Origin: Chara braunii
Taxonomy: Eukaryota > Plantae > Charophyceae
Length of the DNA stretch: 64,000 nucleotides
NCBI GenBank assembly: GCA_003427395.1
Contig: BFEA01000023.1
Span: forward strand, 135,882 to 199,881
Reading direction: 5' to 3'
Shown here: positions 1 to 25,994 of the stretch, one piece after another
Numbering within the stretch: position 1 is the first letter of the stretch
Layout: the number at the start of each line of letters is the position of its first letter
Program-made: the position numbers and the translations under genes
Notes under the pieces: model-generated
What the model was told of the DNA's origin: nothing
Database searches by the model: none
Seen by the model: only the letters and a program-made list of their open reading frames with translations

Positions 1-1
1 G

Positions 2-1595
2 GCGACGGGAAAGGCCGACTGATTGGATCGACATATCTCTTCAGATCCCTGGACGACCGCAATCTCCATCCCACACCACGTCCCCACCAAACTCCAAAAG
101 TCGCTAATTAATGTTCTGAATGGCTACGTGGAAGTATTGAGTGTGCGCGATGATGATATCGGCCTAACTAACATGATTGAACATGCCATTCTCACAGGGG
201 ATCATCCACCCATTAGCTATGTTCCTTATAGGTACTCACCAGCTCAAAGAGCGGCCGCTTTTTAGCGGATCAAAGAATTTGAAGCTAATGGATGGATCGA
301 ACCCGCTATAGGACCATGGTCTTTTCCCATTGTGATTGTGCCTAAAAAGGCCGGAGGAATTCGCATTTGCATCGATTATCGAAAGTTGAATGATATCACG
401 ATCAAGGATGTGTACCCTCTCCCCCTTATTGCCAAGTTATTGGATGCGATTGGGAGTGCTCAATTTTTCAGCAAGTTTGATGTTCGCCATGGGTTCCATC
501 ATCTTTTTGTTCGAGAAGAAGATCGCCCGAAGACTGCGTTCGTACTCTTCGAAGGTACGTGGCAATGGATTCGATGTCCGATGGGCATCTGCAATGCTCC
601 CGCAACGTTACAGCGAGCCATGAACATGGTCTTTCAGAACTTTGTGCGGAAGACTCGTCTGGCGCAGAGTATCATTAACTACTGCGTGATTGTGTACATG
701 GATGACATTTTGGTGTATTCAAGTTCCTACGAAGGGCACGTGCAACACATCGAATGGGCGTTGCATACGTTACTAGATGCCGGTTTCAAGGTAGCGTTCG
801 AGAAGTGCCAGTTTTTCCTTACCACCATTTCCTTCCTTGGACACGTGGTGACAGACCAAGGACTCAGGCCAGAGCCGCAAAAGGTGGCAGCTGTGAGAGA
901 TGTTTCAGTGCCTACGACTATCACGCAAGTTCGCGCCTTTTTGGGCCTGGCCTCGTATTACCGAAGGTTCATCAAGGACTTCGCGGCGATTGCGGGACCC
1001 CTCACGAATCTGCTGCGAAAGGATCAACCGTTGATCTGGACGCCGGAGTGTGATCAAGCGTTCTCGAAACTCAAGGCCGCCCTCATTTCGGCCCCGGTCC
1101 TTATAAGGCCAGATCCCGAAAAGCCTTTTGTCCTCATTACTGACTGGCAGCCAGAGGCAATTTCGGCGATTCTGGCCCAGGTGGGACCAAACGGACTCGA
1201 GTGCGTAGTGGAGTATGCGTCCAAATCGGTGCCTACCTGCAAGCGTAACTACGCCGCTCCAATAGGAGAATGCTACGCGACTCTGTGGGGAATCAGTCAC
1301 TTCCGAGCGTACTTGTACGGGCGGAAGTTCATATTGGTAACTTCATGAGCCTCTGCTAGCCCTGAAGAAATCTAAGGATTGCTCGGGCATGATCGGGCGA
1401 TGGGCAACGGTGCTGCAGAGCATGGACTTCGAAATTCGTCACCGGAAACACGAAAGGCACGGGAACGCGGACGGATTGACACGACTGCACCGACCTGAGA
1501 AGGTTTTGAAGAGAGAGGAGGTGATTCCGTGGAACGAACCGAAGGAGGAGAACAAACCTCGGTACGGCCAAGTGGAGATCCTGTCAAAGGAGTAA
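2..1595 (+). pseudogene. pol: reverse transcriptase + RNase H (disrupted)
   Basis: RT motifs IRICIDYRKLN, FSKFDVRHGFH, MPMG-like CPMGICNAPA, YMDD, FLGH, FLGLASYYRRFI; RNaseH LITDWQPEAISAIL...NADGLTR. In-frame TAG at 263-265 and a frameshift near 1343; ends TAA 1593-1595. Confidence 0.95.
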
Positions 1596-1671
1596 GTGAC
1601 ACGGGGTCTAATTTTTTTTTGTTGTTTTCTGCCCCTCTGCAATTCAATCCCATCTCTCCCTCTCTGCCATC

Positions 1672-3403
1672 ATGACTACCCCACCCGTCTCTGCGACCCC
1701 CTCTTCTCCTACTAATTCTGCCCCCCTCACCTCCTCTGATTTCTTTGCCACCCTCCCCGATAAATTCTGCTATTTTTGCACATGTATTGCACGGGTTTAT
1801 GGGGTTGACTGTCATCCTTTCGAAACCGGGTTTGTCGATTGGGTAGAATGTGCCACGTGTGTCAATCGAGGGCACGGGGCCTGTGTTCAATATCGGACGA
1901 GCAGCAAGGAATGGAGGTGTCCTCTGTGTAGAACGGCCAAACTCCCCACAGAGGTTCGATTCGAGGCCGCCCGAACGGACGGACCTGAATATGACGAGAA
2001 ATACCGACGAGCGGAGGTTTGGACGGATAAAATTTTATCAGCTAAATTAGCGGGATTATCATTGGGTCACCTCACCAAACACGACAGACGTAGGGCTACC
2101 GAGAGATCTCGGGACTATCGATGGATCAACGATCATTTAGAGAAGCGTAAAACTGACGGATCTGGTTCGTGGCTGACAGTCCCTCATCCATTTCAGAGAC
2201 ATGATTGGACCCGATCTGCTCACGAAGAGCAGACCACTCATTTCGCGATACGTGTCACGGAGGCAACTATAGACCAGAACCGATGGTTATGGTCCAATAT
2301 ACGAGATGATGTCAAATACGTTGTCGCCAACTGTCTGGTCTATGCCGCGGATCGCGCCCCAATACGAGGACCGAACACGATAGTACCTACGGAAGTTGAA
2401 CGCCCCTTCCAGCGAGTCAGTATGGACACAACAGATATTGATGTGCCACCTGGCTCAAACCGCTGTGAATATTTTATCCTTTTAGTATTAATAGATAATT
2501 TTTTCCAAATACATCGAAGTCTACCCCTGCAAGACCCGCAAGGCCGCAGAAATAGCCACGTACATCGATTGGTTCCTCTATACCCATCTAGATACGGAAG
2601 AAATTCTGACCGACGATGGGTCTGAATTTAAAGGCGAAGTAGAGGAATTGTTCGCACGGAGGGGCATCACGCTCCGACATACGGCACCCCATGTGTCTCA
2701 GTCGAACGGATGGGCCGAAAATCCCAACCATATGATTAAAACAGCCCTTCGCAGGAATTTAGCGGCCCATGACACGCGTCCATGGCCTGAGATGGTGTAT
2801 CAGATCGTCGGAATTCACCGGGCCATCCCTCATGAGTCCACGGGGTTCACCCCCTTTCAGCTTCGCACTAATAGCCTCCCCTGTGTCGACTACCGGGGTA
2901 ACTCGAAAATTGCCGAAGCAGGGGGCAGAGACAAGCGTGCCTCCCTCAAGGCCAAGGCCAAAAGGTATACCGAATTAATGGAACAGGCTGTCCTGAAGCT
3001 AGCCCGAAAAAGACAGAGGATGACCAATCTGGCCCACGGTAGGCAGGTCCGTAGCTCGGAGGCTCGAAATGGAAATGCTGGGCCCCAGCATCAATATAAA
3101 TTAGGGGACCTAGTGCAGGTACGTAAATGTGCAAGCGACCGGAAATTCGCTCCCAAGTTTTCTGACTGTTTTCACGTTGTCGAGCTCGGACCCAACGGCG
3201 CCAACACGGTGCGCATCGCGCCCGAGGCTAGTGCCAGCCATAGCTTTGTCCCCATCGTCCGACATACCTCCTACCTCCAACCTCTCCCTCCCTCTGATCT
3301 CCCCCTTTCTTCCTCCTTCGAAGGCGAGGAGAACGACGACGATCTAACTCTCTCTCCGCTCTCTCCCTCCTGTCCCTCGTCTTCCTCTCCGTCCTCGCCA
3401 TGA
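1672..3403 (+). pseudogene. PHD finger-integrase ORF (PHD, HHCC zinc-binding, DDE core, SH3-like C-terminus); one frameshift near 2500
   Basis: CYFCTC..WVECATC..H.AC..WRCPLC fits the C4HC3 pattern. AHEE..THF..NCLV is the zinc-binding region. Core PFQRVSMD, ILTDDGSEF, SNGWAEN; C-terminal YKLGDLVQVR..KFAPKF. ORFs 1672-2625 and 2648-3403 join if one T is removed from the T-run near 2500. Confidence 0.9.
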
Positions 3404-3878
3404 GCTTCATCACGGAGCGGGCTCTCGATGATCAACTGTTGCAGCCACACGGCCACATCTCGGAAATTCGGCAAGTTCGTCATCCATGGCTTAATACGGA
3501 TCTTCGGCGCCTGGCGCAGTTCTTTTGCGATGTGGGTGTGTGTGCAGCCGCCGTCGATTCCAAGGGAGTCGGAAGGCAGTAGTATTGGCAGAGGTGGTAG
3601 CGGTTCATCGGCGAGCGGCTCCCGGAACGAGCCACGTCACCACGGTCGCGGCTTTCAGCGGCGACATCAGTACGATCAATCCACTGTGGCATACCGTGAT
3701 CTTGACCTCGCTGCGAGAGTGGACGGAGCAGGTGTCCGACGTGTGGCAGCACGGTCTTGCCCGACCAGGGCACAATCTCATCCCGACCTTTGCACCTTAT
3801 CTTGACGGGGTCCGCCTCTCTCCGCGCGATCCAGCAGTTGCGATCCCCACCCTCGTTGCTTTCCCATGCCCCCAATGA
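3400..3878 (+). pseudogene. Retroelement accessory ORF A (~160 aa, one frameshift), unknown function
   Basis: ATG overlaps the integrase stop (ATGA). Homologous to element 2 ORF starting 18516(-): MSFITERA..RQVRHPWLNTDLRRLA vs MGFALESA..RQVVHLRLNPDLLRFA; VTTVAAFSGD vs VTVIVVFSGD. Confidence 0.7.
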
Positions 3879-4996
3879 ACCGCGCCACCCCCCTCGCTCC
3901 TCTCTCCATCTTCGGTCTCCCCTCTCTTTTCCCTACCTTCTGGCAGTCCGATCTTCATCCTCATCTTTCCCTCTTGATCGAACCCCTTTCCGTCCCGCTT
4001 CTTAATCCCGGGCATTGGCGACTTTGGCGCGAGACCTTTGTCGAACTGTCCATGTGTTTGGCTCGAGTGCGGGTGACGTGGACGCGGACCAGCGAGCGTC
4101 CCACGCAGCTCAAAAATCTGGAATTACTGATCATACAAGCTTGGAGGACTAACGTGGAGGGTGATCTCCTCGGTTTTCTCTTCGGATCGGTGCGGCCGGG
4201 ACATCGCCAACTAATCGCTCAAGAACTCATCGCGCCGATCGCGCAACTGGCGGACGATCTCTCTCTTGACATCGTTTCACAAAGCGACGACAGCCCCGCT
4301 CCGCACGTACTCACGCGAACGTTGGATCCGTATCTTCAGTGGAGTGCATGCTTGGAAGAGCCTGGGGACGAAGGCTCTCTGCCGTCGCGGCAGGAGTATC
4401 TGAAGCCATACGGCATCATCAATCACGCTTTCTATCCGAAGGCGGAGGAGGTGGTGATAGAAGGAGAGGAAAGTGACGACGGCGAGGAAACATCGGAAGA
4501 AGGAAGCTATAGCGAGTATAGCGAGGGCGAGCAGAGCGAAGAAGAAGAAAAAGAAGAGGAAGAAGAAACCGGGTCTGAGTGGGAAGCCTTGCCGGAGGAA
4601 GCGACGCGTACTGGCACGGAGGCAAAAGATCCTGAGGCAGCGCGCAAGCGGGAAGAAGTTGTCACCGGGAAACATCAACTGGAGCTCGCCACCGGAGCTA
4701 GCTTGTGCATCGGTGACGATCCGACCAGGGATCCAGAGCCGCCGAAGCCCGAAGATGGCGACCCAGCAACCGCCACCTCCAGCACCTCACAGCCGAGACG
4801 GAGCCGATCCACCTCCCCCTCCAGCCCTCCCCGTCCCCCAGTTCGTCCACGTATCGATGGGGGGGATAGCATCCCCGGACCTTATCCCGCCGTCCCCTTG
4901 ATTACCTCACCCTCGAGCAGATCTACACCCCCGTCACCTTCCCCCGCCACTTGTTCCATCCCCATCTCTTCCGTGATTTCTACTCTACGCGCCTAA
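3875..4996 (+). CDS. Retroelement accessory ORF B (373 aa; globular N-half, acidic tract, R/S/P-rich tail), unknown function
   Basis: Open frame whose ATG overlaps the ORF A stop (ATGA). Homolog in element 2: LLGFLFGSVRPGHRQLIAQELIAPIAQLADDLSLDIVS vs LFVRLLFDEVAPRGRATVANEILVFLAQIVDDVPLSIIS; acidic tract and RRSRS also shared. Confidence 0.75.
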   Translation: MNRATPLAPLSIFGLPSLFPTFWQSDLHPHLSLLIEPLSVPLLNPGHWRLWRETFVELSMCLARVRVTWTRTSERPTQLKNLELLIIQAWRTNVEGDLLGFLFGSVRPGHRQLIAQELIAPIAQLADDLSLDIVSQSDDSPAPHVLTRTLDPYLQWSACLEEPGDEGSLPSRQEYLKPYGIINHAFYPKAEEVVIEGEESDDGEETSEEGSYSEYSEGEQSEEEEKEEEEETGSEWEALPEEATRTGTEAKDPEAARKREEVVTGKHQLELATGASLCIGDDPTRDPEPPKPEDGDPATATSSTSQPRRSRSTSPSSPPRPPVRPRIDGGDSIPGPYPAVPLITSPSSRSTPPSPSPATCSIPISSVISTLRA

Positions 4997-5379
4997 TCGC
5001 TACCGTTTACCCCCACCGCTCCCTTCAGCTCGCTGCCCCCACGTTCTGTCTGCATATCCTGTTGTTCAGCGCTGCGTGGGAGCAGTGCAACGTAGTCAAC
5101 GTCTACTGCGTATTCACGGGGACGATCCCCGCCTGTCGCCACTACGATTTCTTTCGCGCAGCGCTCTTCCGCACCCTCTCCTCCCTCTACCATGACTATC
5201 TCGTCTCTCTCCCTCATAGCGGCGATCGCTTCCCTCGTTTTCATCGGATCATTCGCTATGAGGAACTTCTGGTGACAATAGAAGGATGGAATCGCTACCT
5301 ACCCCCACTCCCTCCCCATCGTCCCTACAGACTTCCCTCCATGTACCGCCGCTACTGGCCCATTCCAACAAGGCGGTAA
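4870..5379 (+). CDS. Retroelement accessory ORF C (no in-frame ATG near its 5' end; overlaps end of ORF B), unknown function
   Basis: Homolog at ~16650-17070(-): AAPTFCLHILLFSAAW..YCVFTGTIP..LYHDYLVSLP vs AAPSFPFNILIFIVAW..YCIIFGTFP..LYAEYLASLP. Confidence 0.65.
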   Translation, partial: HPRTLSRRPLDYLTLEQIYTPVTFPRHLFHPHLFRDFYSTRLIATVYPHRSLQLAAPTFCLHILLFSAAWEQCNVVNVYCVFTGTIPACRHYDFFRAALFRTLSSLYHDYLVSLPHSGDRFPRFHRIIRYEELLVTIEGWNRYLPPLPPHRPYRLPSMYRRYWPIPTRR

Positions 5380-7256
5380 AACCCAATCGCCCGACTATCC
5401 CCCCCCTTCACCCAATCGACAAGAGGAGAACGGCACGAATCAGTAAGCTTCGCGAAGATCATGCCATCGACGATAACGTCAACCTACGCTCTGATTCAAC
5501 GGGCCGTGATGAGCCAGGATGCAGAGTACACGGAGAACCAGCGGACGATGATGGTGTCACCTGGACGACCTCCGACGATTCCAGCAGCACAAGCCAATGG
5601 ACTCGCGAAGAGATGGCAATTGAAGTTGGCACCAACATGAACTCTGGCGCGATTATCTGCTTGGTTCCTCATGCATCACTCTTTCCCCTCCTTCCTTCTC
5701 CGTCGTGACATGCAATCAGGAGATCGCATAATTTTGGAACCCCCTGCGCGTCACATATGTGACGAACTACTTCCCGAACCCGTGCTATCTTTCGTACCCC
5801 TTTGGTTTGAATTTTTCTTGTATCATACCGACCCCGTTTGATTTCTTGATTTCGGGCGCCGCGTTTTGGGCCCCTATCTTCCGGAAGCTTTTGTGATTCT
5901 TCGGTTCTGCTTTTTCTTTTGCAAGTCGGGAAATGCATAGGAATTTACGCGCGCCTTAGCGAGCGCCCTGGGAATTGGGCACGACAGTTGGGAATTCCGG
6001 GATAAGCGGAACCTCGACGTGTCCTTTTTGTGTGTGAATGTTCTTGGTCGCGTTGGGGAAAACTCTCGGAATTTTGCGAGGACACGAATAGGCGTAGGAC
6101 TTTCTTTTCCCGCGTCAACCCTTTTGCGCGCGGATATGGTGATTTCAATTTTGAATTGGTTTAGGACATAGGCAACCTGTAACTGTTTCGATGCCTTTTT
6201 CTTTTTCTTTTTGTTGACAGCGCCATGCATACGAAGCTTTCTTCTCTTACCCCCCCCCCCGCTCCGTTTCCCGCATCGTTCTCTCCCACGCTCTTTTCTC
6301 CTTCCCCCCTCCCTTCTCGCAACTGTTTTCCCTCTCCCTCTCCCGCTCTGATCAATTGCGCGCCCATTTCCCTTTCTTGATCATCTCAATCTTGGACCCG
6401 TCTCACGCTGCTTTTCGCGCCTCGTCTCTTCCCGCTCATCGACATTGGCTCACGAAGCCCGGCTAATCCTCTGATCACCCCGACTCACCAATCAGACGCG
6501 TTGAGTAGGAGGAACTTCCTGCTACGCGACGAATCTAATTGGTCGACCATTGGGCTCGGAAGGATCAACATGGCTTCCGTAGCGCGCTCCTCGCCAAGTC
6601 TTCTCCTCTTGGTTCTTTTCTTACACCTCGATTTTCTCCTTGCCTTCTCTCTCCCTCGCCCCCCTTCTCGCCACTATAAATTCCACAAACGCGCCCGCAA
6701 ATCTCTCTTACGTTCTCGACTCCCAAGCCAGCTTCCGGGAAGCAGTGGCTAGGTAGAGTGTTTGTGCGAGTCGAAAAGTCCTGACGGGCTGACGATAGGC
6801 TGGCCGGTTGTGCGCTTGGTCACCACGACGGACTGTGGGATCCAAACGAACCGCGTCAAGTTTACGTCGGCGGGGTGACGATCGCAGTGGTGGGAGTTAG
6901 CACTCGACGGCAGGGATCGTCGGTGCGGGTATGAGGATTAATGATTGGAGTTGAGTGGGTGATTGGCCCGAGGCCATATTGGAATTCACTGCGAATGCGC
7001 CTTTATTGGTTGCGGATCTTTATCTCTGGCGTGAGTGTACGGCGGCAACGCCGAACTTCCTCTTTTCGGATCTTGTCATCTCCTATCTCGACATTCCTCC
7101 CTCGNNNNNNNNNNNNNNNNNNNNNNNNNNNNNNNNNNNNNNNNNNNNNNNNNNNNNNNNNNNNNNNNNNNNNNNNNNNNNNNNNNNNNNNNNNNNNNNN
7201 NNNNNNNNNNNNNNNNNNNNNNNNNNNNNNNNNNNNNNNNNNNNNNNNNNNNNNNN

Positions 7257-7294
<38 letters not shown>

Positions 7295-16700: not shown

Positions 16701-19700
16701 AGATCGACAAAATGGATAATTCAGTGAACGAGGGGGAATCGATGATTGGTTCAGGGAAGAGAAGCGAGGTATTCAGCATAGAGGGTGGGGATCGTGTGCA
16801 GGGTATTATTGCGTAGGGGCTCGTAATCTTCCACAACGGGAAAGGTCCCGAAAATAATGCAATACAACTCCATATGGGTGTACTGCCTCCATGCAACAAT
16901 GAAAATAAGAATATTGAAAGGAAAGGAGGGAGCGGCATAGGGGTGGACTTCACAGTGTAAGCGGACAACACAATAGCGATAGAAGAGCTGGCGATAGTCG
17001 TGGGGGAATTTCACGTGGGGGAAGAGAGAAGGAAAGGTAATGAAGAGGGCGGAGGAAGATGGGACGTGGCACGGTACGGAGCGCCCGGGCGGGAAGAAGG
17101 ACGGGGACGAAACGCCGAGGGGGTGAAAAAAGAGAGAGATGGTGAGCGAGACCGGCGGCGGTGGCGGGAGGATTCCGCACCATCGTGGCGACTAACCTCT
17201 TCTTCAGGTAATTCCAGATTCCGCATGGAATCCGCTGGTACGGTTAGTCGCGAGCTTGTTCACAACACTACTTCGTGTTCTTCTGATGATGGATGACTCT
17301 CCTCGTCCTCACTTCCTTCGTTTTCCGCTTCTTCTTCTTCGTTGTCTTCTTCAGTCATCAACTCGACTTCAACTTCCTCCTCTTCTTCCTCTGCTTGCTG
17401 GTCGGGGAGAGCTATCGACTTGGGATCGTCGTCGGATGGCACTTCCCCATTGTCTTTGTTAGCTGCCCAAAAATCTCCCAGATCAAAGTTGTCAAGGGAG
17501 ATTTCGTCCAGGTCGAGATAATTTCACTCGGCTGGGTCATGTTGAACCTGGAAGTGTCCGACGTCCTCCGTGCAACTAGTCTAGATGATCGTCGGTGTTA
17601 GTGTCCGCTCCAAGGTTGCTGGTCCATCTGGTTTGGATCACTAGGATTGAAGGAGATGATGCTTAGAGGCACGTCGTCGACGATCTGTGCCAAGAAGACC
17701 AAGATTTCGTTGGCCACGGTCGCTCTTCCTCGTGGTGCCACCTCATCAAAAAGGAGTCTCACAAAAAGTCCACTTGTATGTGATGGGCCAAAAGCAGAGT
17801 AATTCCGTCCGCGAAGACTACTTTCCGATTTTCGTAATAACGCGCCCAATGCGCCTTCACTGAGAGCAGACAGAAGCTTGTGGCTACAAATCCTATCCAA
17901 TCGAGAATATACTCAGGACGAAAAAGGGGGATTGATGTGCGATGGATTTCAAAAGAGAGTAGAGGATCGGCCCGAGATGGCCAGAGAGTTGAAGGATTAA
18001 AAGGGAGAGAGAAAGTAGAGAAGTAATTCATCCGTGAGGAGGGTGGAAGGGACGAAGAGCAAGAAGCAGTGGGGCCGTAAAATCCGATGTACTGAATCAC
18101 AGCAAAAATGTGTCGATACACTTTGTGCCCACCACCTGCTCGCCTGGTCTGGCCAGATGCGGCCGCCAATCCGCCACGGGTTCACACCCCCACCCGTACA
18201 GTCTCTCCACTGTTTCACTCCGCCGAGCGATGTCGATACCGCAATAATCGCCACTGAATACGACTATCACGGTTACGTCACTTCACCCTGACTGAGAGTA
18301 ATGTAAAAATGTTGATGCCTCCACCAAGATCACCGCAGAACCATGATCCGTCGAGATCGTCCCCTCCGCCGCTGAGTACCTAGCTTGTCGGTTGAATAAC
18401 TATGCGAATCGCAGTAGATCGGGGTTGAGCCGCAGATGAACTACTTGGCGAAACTGCAGGGACGCTCGAGATATAAGAAGTCGAGTAGAGATGGCCGACT
18501 CAAGTGCAAAACCCATGGCGATGCCTAGGAGCAAGGGTATCAGAAGAGGAAGAGGAAGGAAGAGAAAAATCTTTGTCTCTACTAGAGAGAGAGGAGGAAG
18601 AAGGAGCGAGAGGATCAGGGGAAGAAAGGGGACGAAGGTAAGAGATATGATGGACGGAAGAGAGTTATGACTTGCACCGTTTCCAAGTCATGCACATCGT
18701 ATCAACCCCATCGGGACCAAGTTCCACTACGCAAAAACAACCAGAAAACTTGGGAGCGAGTTTCCAGTTGCGTGCACATTTATGGGTTTTTTTTTTTTTT
18801 TTTTTTTTTTTTTTGACAATGCTTCAATTTATTCGTGGGGAGCCACACGTGCTGGGAACCGAGCCCAACATCCCATATGAAACATGAAACATAATTGAAA
18901 ACATATACAGAAAAACGAGACTTTTATCCGTTTTTGCCTAAGAATAGGATCATGAGCAATTACTAGCCTATTGGATGAAGAACCCCACGAAATAGGCTAA
19001 AATTCAGAGAAAGTATGAAAAAATATGAAAAAATATGAGAAGTTTTTTTCTAAATTGCAAGAAAGGACTATAAAAACCTCTTTTTTTTTAAGATACCGGG
19101 GTCATTACCCGACTTTGGCTAAGAACATTATGAACTATTTAGAAAATTACTACGACAATCTTCAGAGAAAAAAACTGACATTTCGTTAAAACTAACATTT
19201 TTTTCTAAATTCACGAAATTGAGCGTACAAAAAAACAACATTTTTTTTGGTTTTTTTTGTCCCCATGATGTCGGATGATCAGATCATTGGATGTCGTGGC
19301 GACTCCCAGTGATCTGACCATTGGATGTATGTTAACGGTACTTTATGTTGAGGTACATCAGATGGACAAAGTGAGATAACCACTTTCTCACCCAACGAGC
19401 AATGAAATTTTGACGAAGTCCATTTTCGTAAATTTAGAAAAAAAAATGTCAGTTTTGACGAAATGGCAGTTAAAAAGGGGCTACTAACAACAAAAATTGC
19501 TACCACAAAGGTCCTACAAATGTTCAAAACCCTCGGAATCCCTTCTAAGAATCTCCAACATTGTCTTACTCCCTGCCGAGCTCTTCCAGGCGTCACACCC
19601 CCACCTTGTTGGGTTACAGGGCAACACAACTCGCCCTAGGTCGTAGTTGCACGAGGTCCCCTAATTTATATCGAATTTGAGGGTCCGCATTCTCATTATG

Positions 19701-21530
19701 GGCCTCATAACTGCAGACCTGTCTACCGTAGGCCAACTCGATCATCCTTGTTTTTTTATGGGTCAATCTAGGGACTGTCTTTTCCATTAATTTAGCGTAC
19801 CTTTTGGCCTTGGCCTTAAGGGACGTCCGTGTGTCCTTTCCCCATGGCTCGACATTTTCCGAGACATCCTGGTTGATGACATAGGGAATACTATTGGTCC
19901 GTAGTTGGAAGGGGGTGAATCCTGTCGATTCATGAGGGGTGGCGGGATGAATTCCAATGATCTGGTACACAATCTTGGGCTAGGGTCGTGTGTCATTAGC
20001 CGCTAGATTCTGTCGTAGGGCGTTTTTTATCATGCGATTTGCATTTTTCACAAGTCCATTGGACTGGGAGACATGCGGGGCAGTATGTCGGAGGGTGACG
20101 CCTCTACGTGTCAACAGTTCCTCTACTTCAACCTTAAACTCAGACCCATTATCGGTTAAAATCTCTTTTGTATCTAGATGGATGTTGAGGAATCGGTCGA
20201 TGTAGGTAGCTATTCCTGAGGCCTTGTGCCTCTTGCACGAATAAATTTCTATTATTGATACCCTACATTATGATATATATATCATATATCATACATTGTT
20301 GTATTTTGAAAAACGATCATTTAAAACCAGTAAAATCGAATATTCGGAACGGTTAGGGTCAGGTGGCACGTCAATAACTGTAGTATCTATGTTGGCACGC
20401 TGAAAAAGACACTCTACCTCTGTCGGAACTATTGTGTTTGAACCACGATTCGGTGCCTGATCGACGACACAGACTAGACAATTATCGACCACGTGCCTAA
20501 CTCCTCGCAAATATTTGAGCAGAATCATTCGATTGATAGCTCCTTCCGTAACACGTATCACAAAGTGAGCAGCCTGTTCCTTGTGAGCGAATCGGGTCCA
20601 ATCGTACTCTTGGAACGGGTGTGGAACCGTCAACCATAATTCTGGTCCGTCTATTTTACGCTTTTCTAGATGACAGTTGATCCATCGATAGTCCCGAGAT
20701 CTCTCGGTTGCCCGTCAACCATAATTATGATCCGTCTGTTTTACGCTTCTCTAGATGACAGTTGATCCATCGGTAGTCCCGAGATCTCTCGGTTGCCCGA
20801 CGTCTATGATGCTTTGTATCGCCCTCTAGTGACTTATCAACTAACTTTGTCAGTAGGATTTTATCCGTCCAGACTTCCGCTCGTCGGAACTTCTTATCGT
20901 ATTCAAGTCCGTCAGCCCTGACGGCTTTAAATAGAGCTTACGTAAGAAGCTTATCTGTACGACACAGAGGACACTTCCAAACCTTGCTAACCGTTCGATA
21001 TCGAACGGATGCGCCATGCTCGCGATTGACACACTTGGCACAATCTACCCAATTAATAAATCCCGGGTCATGTGGGTAAAAATCCACTATGTAGACTCGT
21101 GAAATGCATGTGGAAAAATAACAGAACTTATCTGGAAGATCTGAGAAGAATGAAGGATCAACGAGCTGAGTAGGAGTAGAAAGATTGGGGAGAGAGGGGA
21201 GAGCATCCACCGTGTTTGAGTGAAGATTCAAACCTTCTGGAGGATTTCCACTTCTTCGTACTTGTGCTCGCTCTTTGATTTTGGATCGTTCCACGGGGTC
21301 ACTCTTCACTTGTAGGGACTCCGTCGGGCCGATGCATACGTGTCAGCCCGTCAGCGTTTCCGTGTCGTTCGTGCTTCATGTGGCGAATGGCAAATTTCAT
21401 GCTCTGCAACATGGTAGCCCATGGTTCCATCATACCCGAGTAATCCTTCAACTTCTTCGATTTATTTTTTTTACGAGAAGGTGATGGAAGCCATGACGGA
21501 CATCAAACTTGCTGAAAAAGCACTCACATC
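13735..21530 (-). mobile_element. Ty3/gypsy-type element 2, older diverged relative of element 1, internally deleted
   Basis: Colinear homologs on -: RT scrap FFSKFDVRHGFHH (~21460-21530), RNaseH end, PHD, integrase, ORFs A/B/C (18516-~16650), ORF E. An AT-rich unrelated insert lies at ~18790-19620. Confidence 0.85.
19640..21130 (-). pseudogene. PHD-integrase of element 2 (multiple disablements)
   Basis: KFCYFSTC..WVDCAKCVNREH..WKCPLC; TVPHPFQ..AHKEQAAHF..NCLVC; HPATPHESTGFTPFQL; YKLGDLVQLR. Confidence 0.9.
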
Positions 21531-25550: not shown

Positions 25551-25994
25551 TCAATTAGTACAATTACTCGATTCCGGTCGCGCGTTTGATTTGTTTTCAT
25601 TTGTTAGATTGATTCATAGGGTGATCTAACGATTAACTGATTTATTGATGCATTGGTTGCTTTTTACCAGTACTGATTGACGACTCGATTGGTTTGTGTG
25701 TTCCTTCACTCCCCCCTTCCCCCCCCCTCCCCTCCCCCTCTTTTTTTTTCTATCATACTTCGAGTGCTTGATTTTCAATCAGTGGATAGATGTGGTGTGA
25801 CCGGTCGATGGTGAAGTCGCTGTCTCTCGTGNNNNNNNNNNNNNNNCCCAACCCGTCCTCCTGAATCCAGAAACCAGTATTCGAGGGTCGTTCTGGCTTT
25901 AAGTACTCCCCCCCCCCGCCTATATCGCCCGCACGTACTTCCGCGTCTGTACACTCCGCCCGCCCTCCCCCGCTGAAACTCAAGCGGCTGTGCT

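Follow-up and report, generated by a model that had tools for sequence, protein, structure and literature searches.

The DNA investigated in this study is a stretch of 64,000 nucleotides from the genome of the charophyte alga Chara braunii (assembly GCA_003427395.1, contig BFEA01000023.1, positions 135,882 to 199,881 of the forward strand), which we refer to as the window. Its first part (window 1-3403) contains the 3' half of the pol region of a degraded long terminal repeat (LTR) retrotransposon of the Ty3/gypsy type, termed element 1, whose integrase is preceded by a PHD-like zinc finger. A second, diverged element on the opposite strand, termed element 2, carries the same finger. The features of both elements, with RT denoting reverse transcriptase, RNase H ribonuclease H and ORF open reading frame, are the following:

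332..1348, plus strand: degraded RT and RNase H of element 1 in frame 2, terminated by a stop (Pfam RVT_1 1e-31, RT_RNaseH_2 3e-27)
1380..1593, plus strand: C-terminal tail of RT-RNase H in frame 3, containing the motif 'NADGLTRL' and terminated by a stop (three-frame translations)
1672..2500, plus strand: initial part of the ORF for finger and integrase, frame 1, comprising a Ser/Pro-rich N-terminus, the C4HC3 finger, the linker, the HHCC domain and the first catalytic Asp
1768..1929, plus strand: C4HC3 cross-brace zinc finger, PHD-like, with C33, C36, C60, C63, H68, C71, C83 and C86 as ligands, and with W81
1930..2220, plus strand: conserved linker of about 97 residues between finger and HHCC domain, kept in all subfamilies
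2221..2343, plus strand: zinc-binding HHCC domain of the integrase with H184, H190 and C221, and with Tyr224 in place of ligand 4 (Pfam Integrase_H2C2, E=2.4e-4)
2425..2719, plus strand: DD35E catalytic core with the first Asp (D252) at 2425, the second Asp at 2612 and the Glu at 2717, and with a shift of the frame near 2500 (translations)
2501..3403, plus strand: remainder of the core of the integrase, followed by a C-terminal domain without chromodomain, frame 2, stop at 3401-3403
20941..21150, minus strand: the same finger in element 2 (tblastn, 67% amino acid identity, query residues 6-169), with ligands 2 and 6 changed to Ser
19614..20940, minus strand: linker, HHCC domain and integrase remains of element 2, interrupted by stops and frameshifts

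The order of domains in element 1 thus leads from RT-RNase H to the C4HC3 finger, the linker, the HHCC domain, the DD35E core and the C-terminal domain. An HHCC domain followed by a DD35E core, with RVT_1 and RNase H located upstream, identifies the protein as a Ty3/gypsy integrase. In the window copy, 35 residues separate the second catalytic Asp from the Glu, and among the relatives described below the Pfam family rve is found in P0003, P0005 and P0017, as is Integrase_H2C2 in relatives. The finger of this copy extends over about 55 residues with a spacing of C-x2-C-x23-C-x2-C-x4-H-x2-C-x11-C-x2-C, where W81 is located two residues before C83. Its ligands were placed by translation of 1672-2625, with C33 at nucleotide 1768 and C86 at nucleotides 1927-1929.

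An earlier note on this DNA had described finger, HHCC and DDE domains as lying in one frame throughout the interval 1672-3403, with the finger directly upstream of the HHCC domain. This description is accurate for the finger, the HHCC domain and the first Asp, which share frame 1, but not for the interval as a whole, since the integrase moves to frame 2 near nucleotide 2500, where the rest of the core is encoded. Similarly, the finger is found upstream of the HHCC domain, but the two do not adjoin, as the conserved linker of about 97 residues follows C86. The copy in element 1 is dead because its frame shifts near nucleotide 2500 and because a Cys of the HHCC domain is replaced by Tyr, unlike in element 2 and in the relatives, where the CxxC pair of this domain is unbroken. 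The same note had found no chromodomain at the C-terminus, which agrees with the absence of a Pfam match up to E=1 in the C-terminal part of the integrase (window 2648-3403) and with the absence of such a match in P0005 and P0017, two relatives with full C-termini.

Recurrence and conservation of the finger

Element 2 spans approximately 21519-16263 on the minus strand and is about 70-73% identical to element 1 on the DNA level, with the sequence identity between the two proteins covering both the finger and the linker. When 1.8 billion representative sequences were searched exhaustively with HMMER, only 31 relatives were retrieved, mostly fragmentary Chara gene models, and the nearest proteins in the databases are hypothetical proteins of Chara braunii. 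At the Chara loci L002-L006 (GCA_003427395.1), translation of the regions upstream of the gene models reveals the finger in two further subfamilies. The metagenomic relatives P0017 and P0031, which are only 32% identical, hold finger, linker, HHCC domain and core in a single ORF. As judged from tblastn and alignments, the finger thus occurs in no fewer than three gypsy subfamilies of Chara as well as in a distantly related metagenomic lineage, which upholds the proposal that it recurs in element 2 and that it constitutes a trait of the lineage. A word-based homologue search with the ORF of 317 amino acids returned only two Chara fragments, both devoid of the finger; limited to the finger region of P0017, such a search yielded three metagenomic proteins, and a scan of metagenome contigs with the alignment A3 confirmed no locus. 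Many of the Chara gene models among the matches (P0003-P0014) represent either fragments of the gypsy element or fusions involving it. One of them (P0009, 1843 amino acids) is a chimera, with RT, RNase H and integrase of the gypsy family interrupting a host-like protein.

The conservation of the finger was analysed in alignments of 9 to 11 sequences, which include the window copy, element 2, the Chara loci L002-L006 and the metagenomic sequences P0017, P0031, P0033, P0035, P0036 and P0039. Each ligand column is occupied in its majority by Cys or His. All eight ligands are retained in the window copy, L004, P0017, P0031 and P0033, and the loss of single ligands is confined to plainly decayed copies. 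The Trp preceding Cys7 is invariant in all 11 aligned sequences. Variation is found in the length of the first loop, which is 23 residues long in Chara and 10 residues long in the metagenomic lineage, and in the segment before the His, which contains five residues in other subfamilies compared to four in the window copy.

The finger was maintained by purifying selection while the lineages were active, as was the rest of the integrase. This is evident from the fraction of non-synonymous changes (pN), which is far below that of synonymous changes (pS) in the metagenomic loci and also between the two elements of the window. Selection was measured pairwise, by comparing natural copies with each other instead of with a family consensus. 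In five metagenomic loci, the finger shows a pN of 0.139 and a pS of 0.667, corresponding to a ratio of the respective rates (dN/dS) of about 0.09 at synonymous sites that are near saturation. In the same loci, dN/dS amounts to 0.045 in the integrase core, to 0.03 in the linker, where it is lowest, and to 0.30 in the acidic N-terminus. Between the window copy and element 2, the finger displays a pN of 0.17 and a pS of 0.74. The check for purifying selection that had been suggested for a family consensus has therefore a positive outcome on the level of individual copies, with all eight ligands kept in those that are intact.

Frame and expression of the integrase ORF

Relative to RT-RNase H, the ORF encoding finger and integrase is offset to the +1 frame in the window, at the Chara loci L003, L004 and L006 and at the metagenomic loci L001, L007, L008 and L010, the latter accounting for four of the four metagenomic contigs with an upstream ORF. 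The exception is L002, with an offset of -1 and clear indels. In the metagenomic lineage, the RT-RNase H and integrase ORFs overlap by 188-407 nucleotides. Within this overlap RT-RNase H reaches its stop, and two further features stand out, a pyrimidine-rich block whose nucleotides are nearly invariant and an in-frame Met that is conserved. This Met precedes Cys1 by about 65 codons and is immediately followed by the motif 'ISLPS', which can also be discerned in the L004 group of Chara. The regions in question are the following:

ORF junctions: window 1380-1700; L001 2180-2620; L007 1478-1933; L008 861-1160; L009 29-391; L010 663-1178

Since the ORF is in the +1 frame and a conserved Met is located ahead of the finger, the latter is the N-terminal domain of the integrase ORF and not an insert in a continuous pol protein. 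The described features of the overlap suggest either a frameshift site or a separate start of the integrase.

The abundance and expression of the family were assessed by mapping reads of one genomic run (X1) and three poly(A) RNA runs to window 1-5800 at 90% likeness. The genomic reads reveal a very high copy number of this gypsy family, with more than 14,000 contig pieces at a likeness of at least 90%, and they contain many sites where the window copy differs from all other copies, mostly by transitions. RNA coverage is low and mostly one-stranded and extends over the whole stretch including the finger in one of the three poly(A) runs. Since the RNA reads are mostly 90-95% alike to the window copy, they stem from other copies, and transcription of the family is weak. 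No spliced joint leading from RT-RNase H to the integrase ORF was seen in the RNA reads, whose depth is too low to exclude it.

Directly downstream of the integrase, a Glu-rich ORF (window 3866-4996, plus strand) constitutes a conserved extra ORF of the gypsy family, whose N-terminal block 'ELLIIQA..T..GDLLGF' is common to the C-terminal parts of P0001, P0002, P0003 and P0014. The runs of N at 7100-7260 and at about 25850-25870 (with 535 N in the window) are assembly gaps near repeats.

Identity of the finger

We consider the finger to be probably a divergent representative of the PHD type. Its sequence features would assign it to the superfold of PHD and RING cross-brace domains and, within this superfold, rather to the PHD than to the RING side. 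The order and spacing of its ligands follow the PHD rule (C-x2-C ... C-x2-C-x4/5-H-x2-C ... C-x2-C) and the Trp before Cys7 is a classical hallmark of PHDs. When two profiles of the finger (A1 and A6) were searched against all sequences of the PDB, the cross-brace matches were all PHDs, with the C-terminal PHD of PHF7 ranking first (E=0.003), followed by ING1L, ING2, YNG2, ZMYND11 and PHF13, and there was no RING among the matches. The PHD of PHF7 (PDB 1weq, 8jwj) is the best match in sequence to a solved structure, with Cys1 to Cys8 aligned and with a long first loop and a W-x-C-x2-C ending; unlike the Chara finger it is part of a chromatin protein of the host, and the E-value of 0.003 is marginal. 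A comparison by hhalign of the finger with the canonical C-terminal PHDs of related gypsy integrases results in a probability of 63-68%, with the ligands in register, compared to 3.9% for the HHCC domain and to at most 1.6% for 20 column-shuffled controls. The corresponding value for a profile built from metagenomic sequences only is 36.5%. Finally, PHD is the only named reader family matched in Pfam, although weakly.

Several observations weigh against this assignment. The best match to the Pfam PHD family (PF00628), found for the window ORF, reaches 16.5 bits (E=0.009) and thus remains below the gathering cut-off of 24 bits. A match of any score is found in only two of nine members, and the intact relative P0017 is not among them. 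No PHD was matched when the metagenome-only profile was searched against the PDB. The AlphaFold models are of modest quality, with a pLDDT of 57.6 for the window copy and of 70.7 for the short-loop relative P0033, and their nearest structural neighbours, all at insignificant scores, are mostly RINGs, including those of Nse1, RING1B, MUL1, PHF7 and K3. The designation as PHD finger in the earlier note is therefore supported by the ligand pattern, the Trp, the profile matches in the PDB and hhalign, and tempered by the Pfam scores and by fold searches that mostly return RINGs.

These fold searches are the basis of an alternative assignment, according to which the finger would be a RING-like C4HC3 variant of the Nse1 or RING-CH type, which acts as E3 ligase or as protein adaptor that recruits or modifies a host factor instead of reading histones. 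We regard this alternative as rather unlikely. It draws on the observation that RINGs head the structure searches of both models, with Nse1, itself a C4HC3 protein, reaching a Z-score of 4.3, followed by RING1B, MUL1, the RING of PHF7 and K3 of KSHV, and that neighbours in the ESM Atlas belong to RING clusters (zf-RING_2/RINGv) at TM-scores of 0.5-0.55. With the metagenome-only profile, the RING of MSL2 is matched at E=0.44. The PHDs among the structural neighbours (MLL3, BAZ2B, ARID5 and MOZ) are ranked below the RINGs, in searches with models of modest confidence and with insignificant scores. In fact, all scores of structural matches obtained in the PDB via Foldseek and VIA wide and in the ESM Atlas are insignificant (Foldseek E of at least 0.03, Z of at most 4.3, TM of about 0.5), which for a domain of about 60 residues weakens the case for a RING. 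This also concerns the RING-like domain of Nse1 (PDB 7dg2, 2ct0), which is the best structural match, with 56 aligned residues and a Z-score of 4.0-4.3, and which is a similarly small cross-brace finger: Nse1 is classed as RING-like and is found in the Smc5/6 complex, and its Z-score is too low to show kinship with the Chara finger. A search of the finger in a protein-language-model Atlas provided no usable match. The ligands offer a further distinction, as RINGs of the C3HC4 or C3H2C3 order contain a His as ligand 4, whereas in all copies of the finger ligand 4 is a Cys and ligand 5 a His, four to five residues apart. This arrangement departs from the rule for such RINGs, but it is compatible with C4HC3 variants such as Nse1 and RING-CH. 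On the level of sequence profiles, the matches of A1 and A6 in the PDB comprise seven PHD proteins and zero RINGs. The similarity to canonical PHDs in hhalign is well above that of the controls, in a comparison whose references were canonical PHDs, the HHCC domain and shuffled columns.

Alternatively, finger and linker could together extend the integrase at its N-terminus in a structural capacity, by aiding in the assembly of the intasome or by binding the cDNA of the element itself, and take no part in the choice of a target. Some retroviral integrases contain N-terminal extension domains in a comparable position. Such a role, which appears quite unlikely to us, would be in line with the location of the finger N-terminal to the HHCC domain, with the conservation of finger and linker as one block running into that domain, with the dN/dS of the linker, which at 0.03 is the lowest, and with the lack of an aromatic cage described below. 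It is countered by the fact that most gypsy integrases function without such a finger and by the sequence signature of a module of the PHD/RING type, whose members usually bind proteins. A kinship to the '4CXXC' zinc finger of CDCA7/R1, by which the finger would bind DNA, for instance in methylated form, is highly improbable. It was suggested by a weak match to the Pfam family zf-4CXXC_R1 in three of nine members, all from the Chara group (E=0.0018, 18.8 bits), which is below the cut-off of 22.7 bits, covers only positions 7-64 of the 99 positions of the model and is absent from the metagenomic lineage, and one of the four ligand pairs of the finger is HxxC instead of CxxC; this identity was thus set aside. 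That the pattern of Cys and His would be a chance feature of decayed sequence devoid of function, as might be suspected from two dead copies in the window and from the two ligands missing in element 2, is refuted by the persistence of the eight ligands across three subfamilies and down to 32% identity and by the strong suppression of non-synonymous change (dN/dS of about 0.09, with synonymous sites near saturation).

For the PHD-like finger that we favour, the residues between Cys4 and His5 bear on a potential specificity. In every copy these are non-aromatic (VNRG, VNRE, IARA, TVKS, AVKS, RILV and KIVV), confirming in the whole lineage that there is no Trp two residues before the His, as was noted for the two copies of the window. 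The aromatic cage found in readers of histone H3 trimethylated at lysine 4 is absent in the entire lineage. Therefore, if the finger reads histone H3, it would not be at trimethyl-lysine 4.

Precedent and proposed role

The attachment of accessory modules of the chromatin type to retroelements has precedents. In chromoviruses, integration is directed by the chromodomain of the integrase (Gao et al. 2008, as cited in PMC6673714). The Chara element resembles such viruses (MAGGY, Tf1) in the fusion of a module of this kind to a gypsy integrase, but the module is an N-terminal zinc finger instead of a C-terminal chromodomain, which is lacking. The combination of reverse transcriptase and integrase domains with Chromo and PHD domains is widespread, and the PHD is a common accessory domain of the transposons of Chlamydomonas and of retrotransposons in general (PMC8557442, PMC6673714, bioRxiv 10.1101/2021.11.30.470311). 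PHDs were also described in ORF1 of CR1-type LINEs (Kapitonov and Jurka 2003) and in REM1 (Perez-Alegre et al. 2005), both as cited in PMC8557442 and PMC6673714. As far as these citing works describe them, they share with the Chara element a PHD as recurrent accessory for which an action on chromatin was proposed, but they belong to other classes of elements with the finger located elsewhere in the protein.

The closest precedent is Gypsy-7a_cRei, an active element of Chlamydomonas reinhardtii, whose domains are listed as GAG, PROT, RT, RH, PHD and INT in the legend of Figure 6A of the respective publication (PMC9940879), where the authors also propose that the PHD may guide insertion and help to avoid harmful sites. 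By this listing, both are Ty3/gypsy elements of green algae with a PHD-type finger between RNase H and integrase, an order that agrees in the window and at the loci L001-L010. They differ in their hosts, a chlorophyte in one case and a charophyte in the other, and in their fingers, which is called a PHD there and remains below the Pfam cut-off here. A separate integrase ORF in the +1 frame, as found in Chara, is not reported in the same legend. The likeness concerns the listed order of domains, and it is compatible with either a shared or an independent origin of the fingers. The earlier note had proposed a candidate new design for chromatin targeting and had named a prior description of the architecture as refutation. 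Since Gypsy-7a_cRei and the widespread fusions of PHDs to transposons are published, both the idea and the order of domains are precedented and, judging from the legend and the authors' proposal, the architecture had in substance already been described for gypsy elements of green algae. New are the presence of such a finger in an alga of the streptophytes, its divergent form with a long loop and without a cage, the demonstration of purifying selection and its location at the start of an integrase ORF that has a frame of its own.

Another combination is found in the metagenomic proteins P0020, P0024, P0026, P0027 and P0053, which by the similarity of linker and HHCC domain are the nearest relatives outside Chara. 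They contain RT, RNase H, a C-5 DNA methyltransferase (DNMT), the HHCC domain, the integrase core and a canonical C-terminal PHD, which is recognised by Pfam at 1e-9 to 1e-11 and in which the second position ahead of the His is aromatic. As in Chara, the integrase of these elements is equipped with a PHD, but it follows the core, and the region between RNase H and integrase is occupied by the DNMT. The published DNMT-bearing retrotransposons of charophytes resemble this group, and the paper describing them makes no mention of a PHD.

With these precedents in mind, we tentatively propose that the finger works as an accessory tether that biases the insertion by the integrase. By attaching to a histone tail or to a protein of the chromatin, it would influence where new copies are inserted by the integrase, a role that in chromoviruses falls to the C-terminal chromodomain missing from this gypsy lineage. 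A choice of insertion sites by the reading of chromatin would follow from precedent only. The favoured reading as a whole, with a PHD-like finger located on a separately framed integrase and acting as accessory tether, appears to us about evenly balanced. Among the points that count against it is the broken state of both copies in the window, caused by the frameshift near 2500 and the change of Cys to Tyr in the HHCC domain of one and by the loss of ligands in element 2. A more specific version, which we consider unlikely, would describe the finger as a true reader of chromatin with unusual specificity, directed towards a histone tail that is unmodified or carries some other mark, or towards another chromatin protein. 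It would steer the integration of a very high-copy gypsy family of Chara from the N-terminus of an integrase that is translated from its own conserved ORF in the +1 frame, apart from RT-RNase H, and would be an independently evolved counterpart of the chromovirus chromodomain in streptophytes.

The genome of Chara braunii is very large and rich in gypsy elements. Integrase-fused reader modules are the clearest known route by which LTR retrotransposons choose safe landing sites, and a conserved finger under selection in a high-copy family of this alga offers a handle on how such elements spread without killing their host. Because the same order of domains was published for Chlamydomonas, the value of our findings resides in the extension to streptophytes, in the evidence for selection and in a divergent finger without aromatic cage, whose ligand is amenable to testing.

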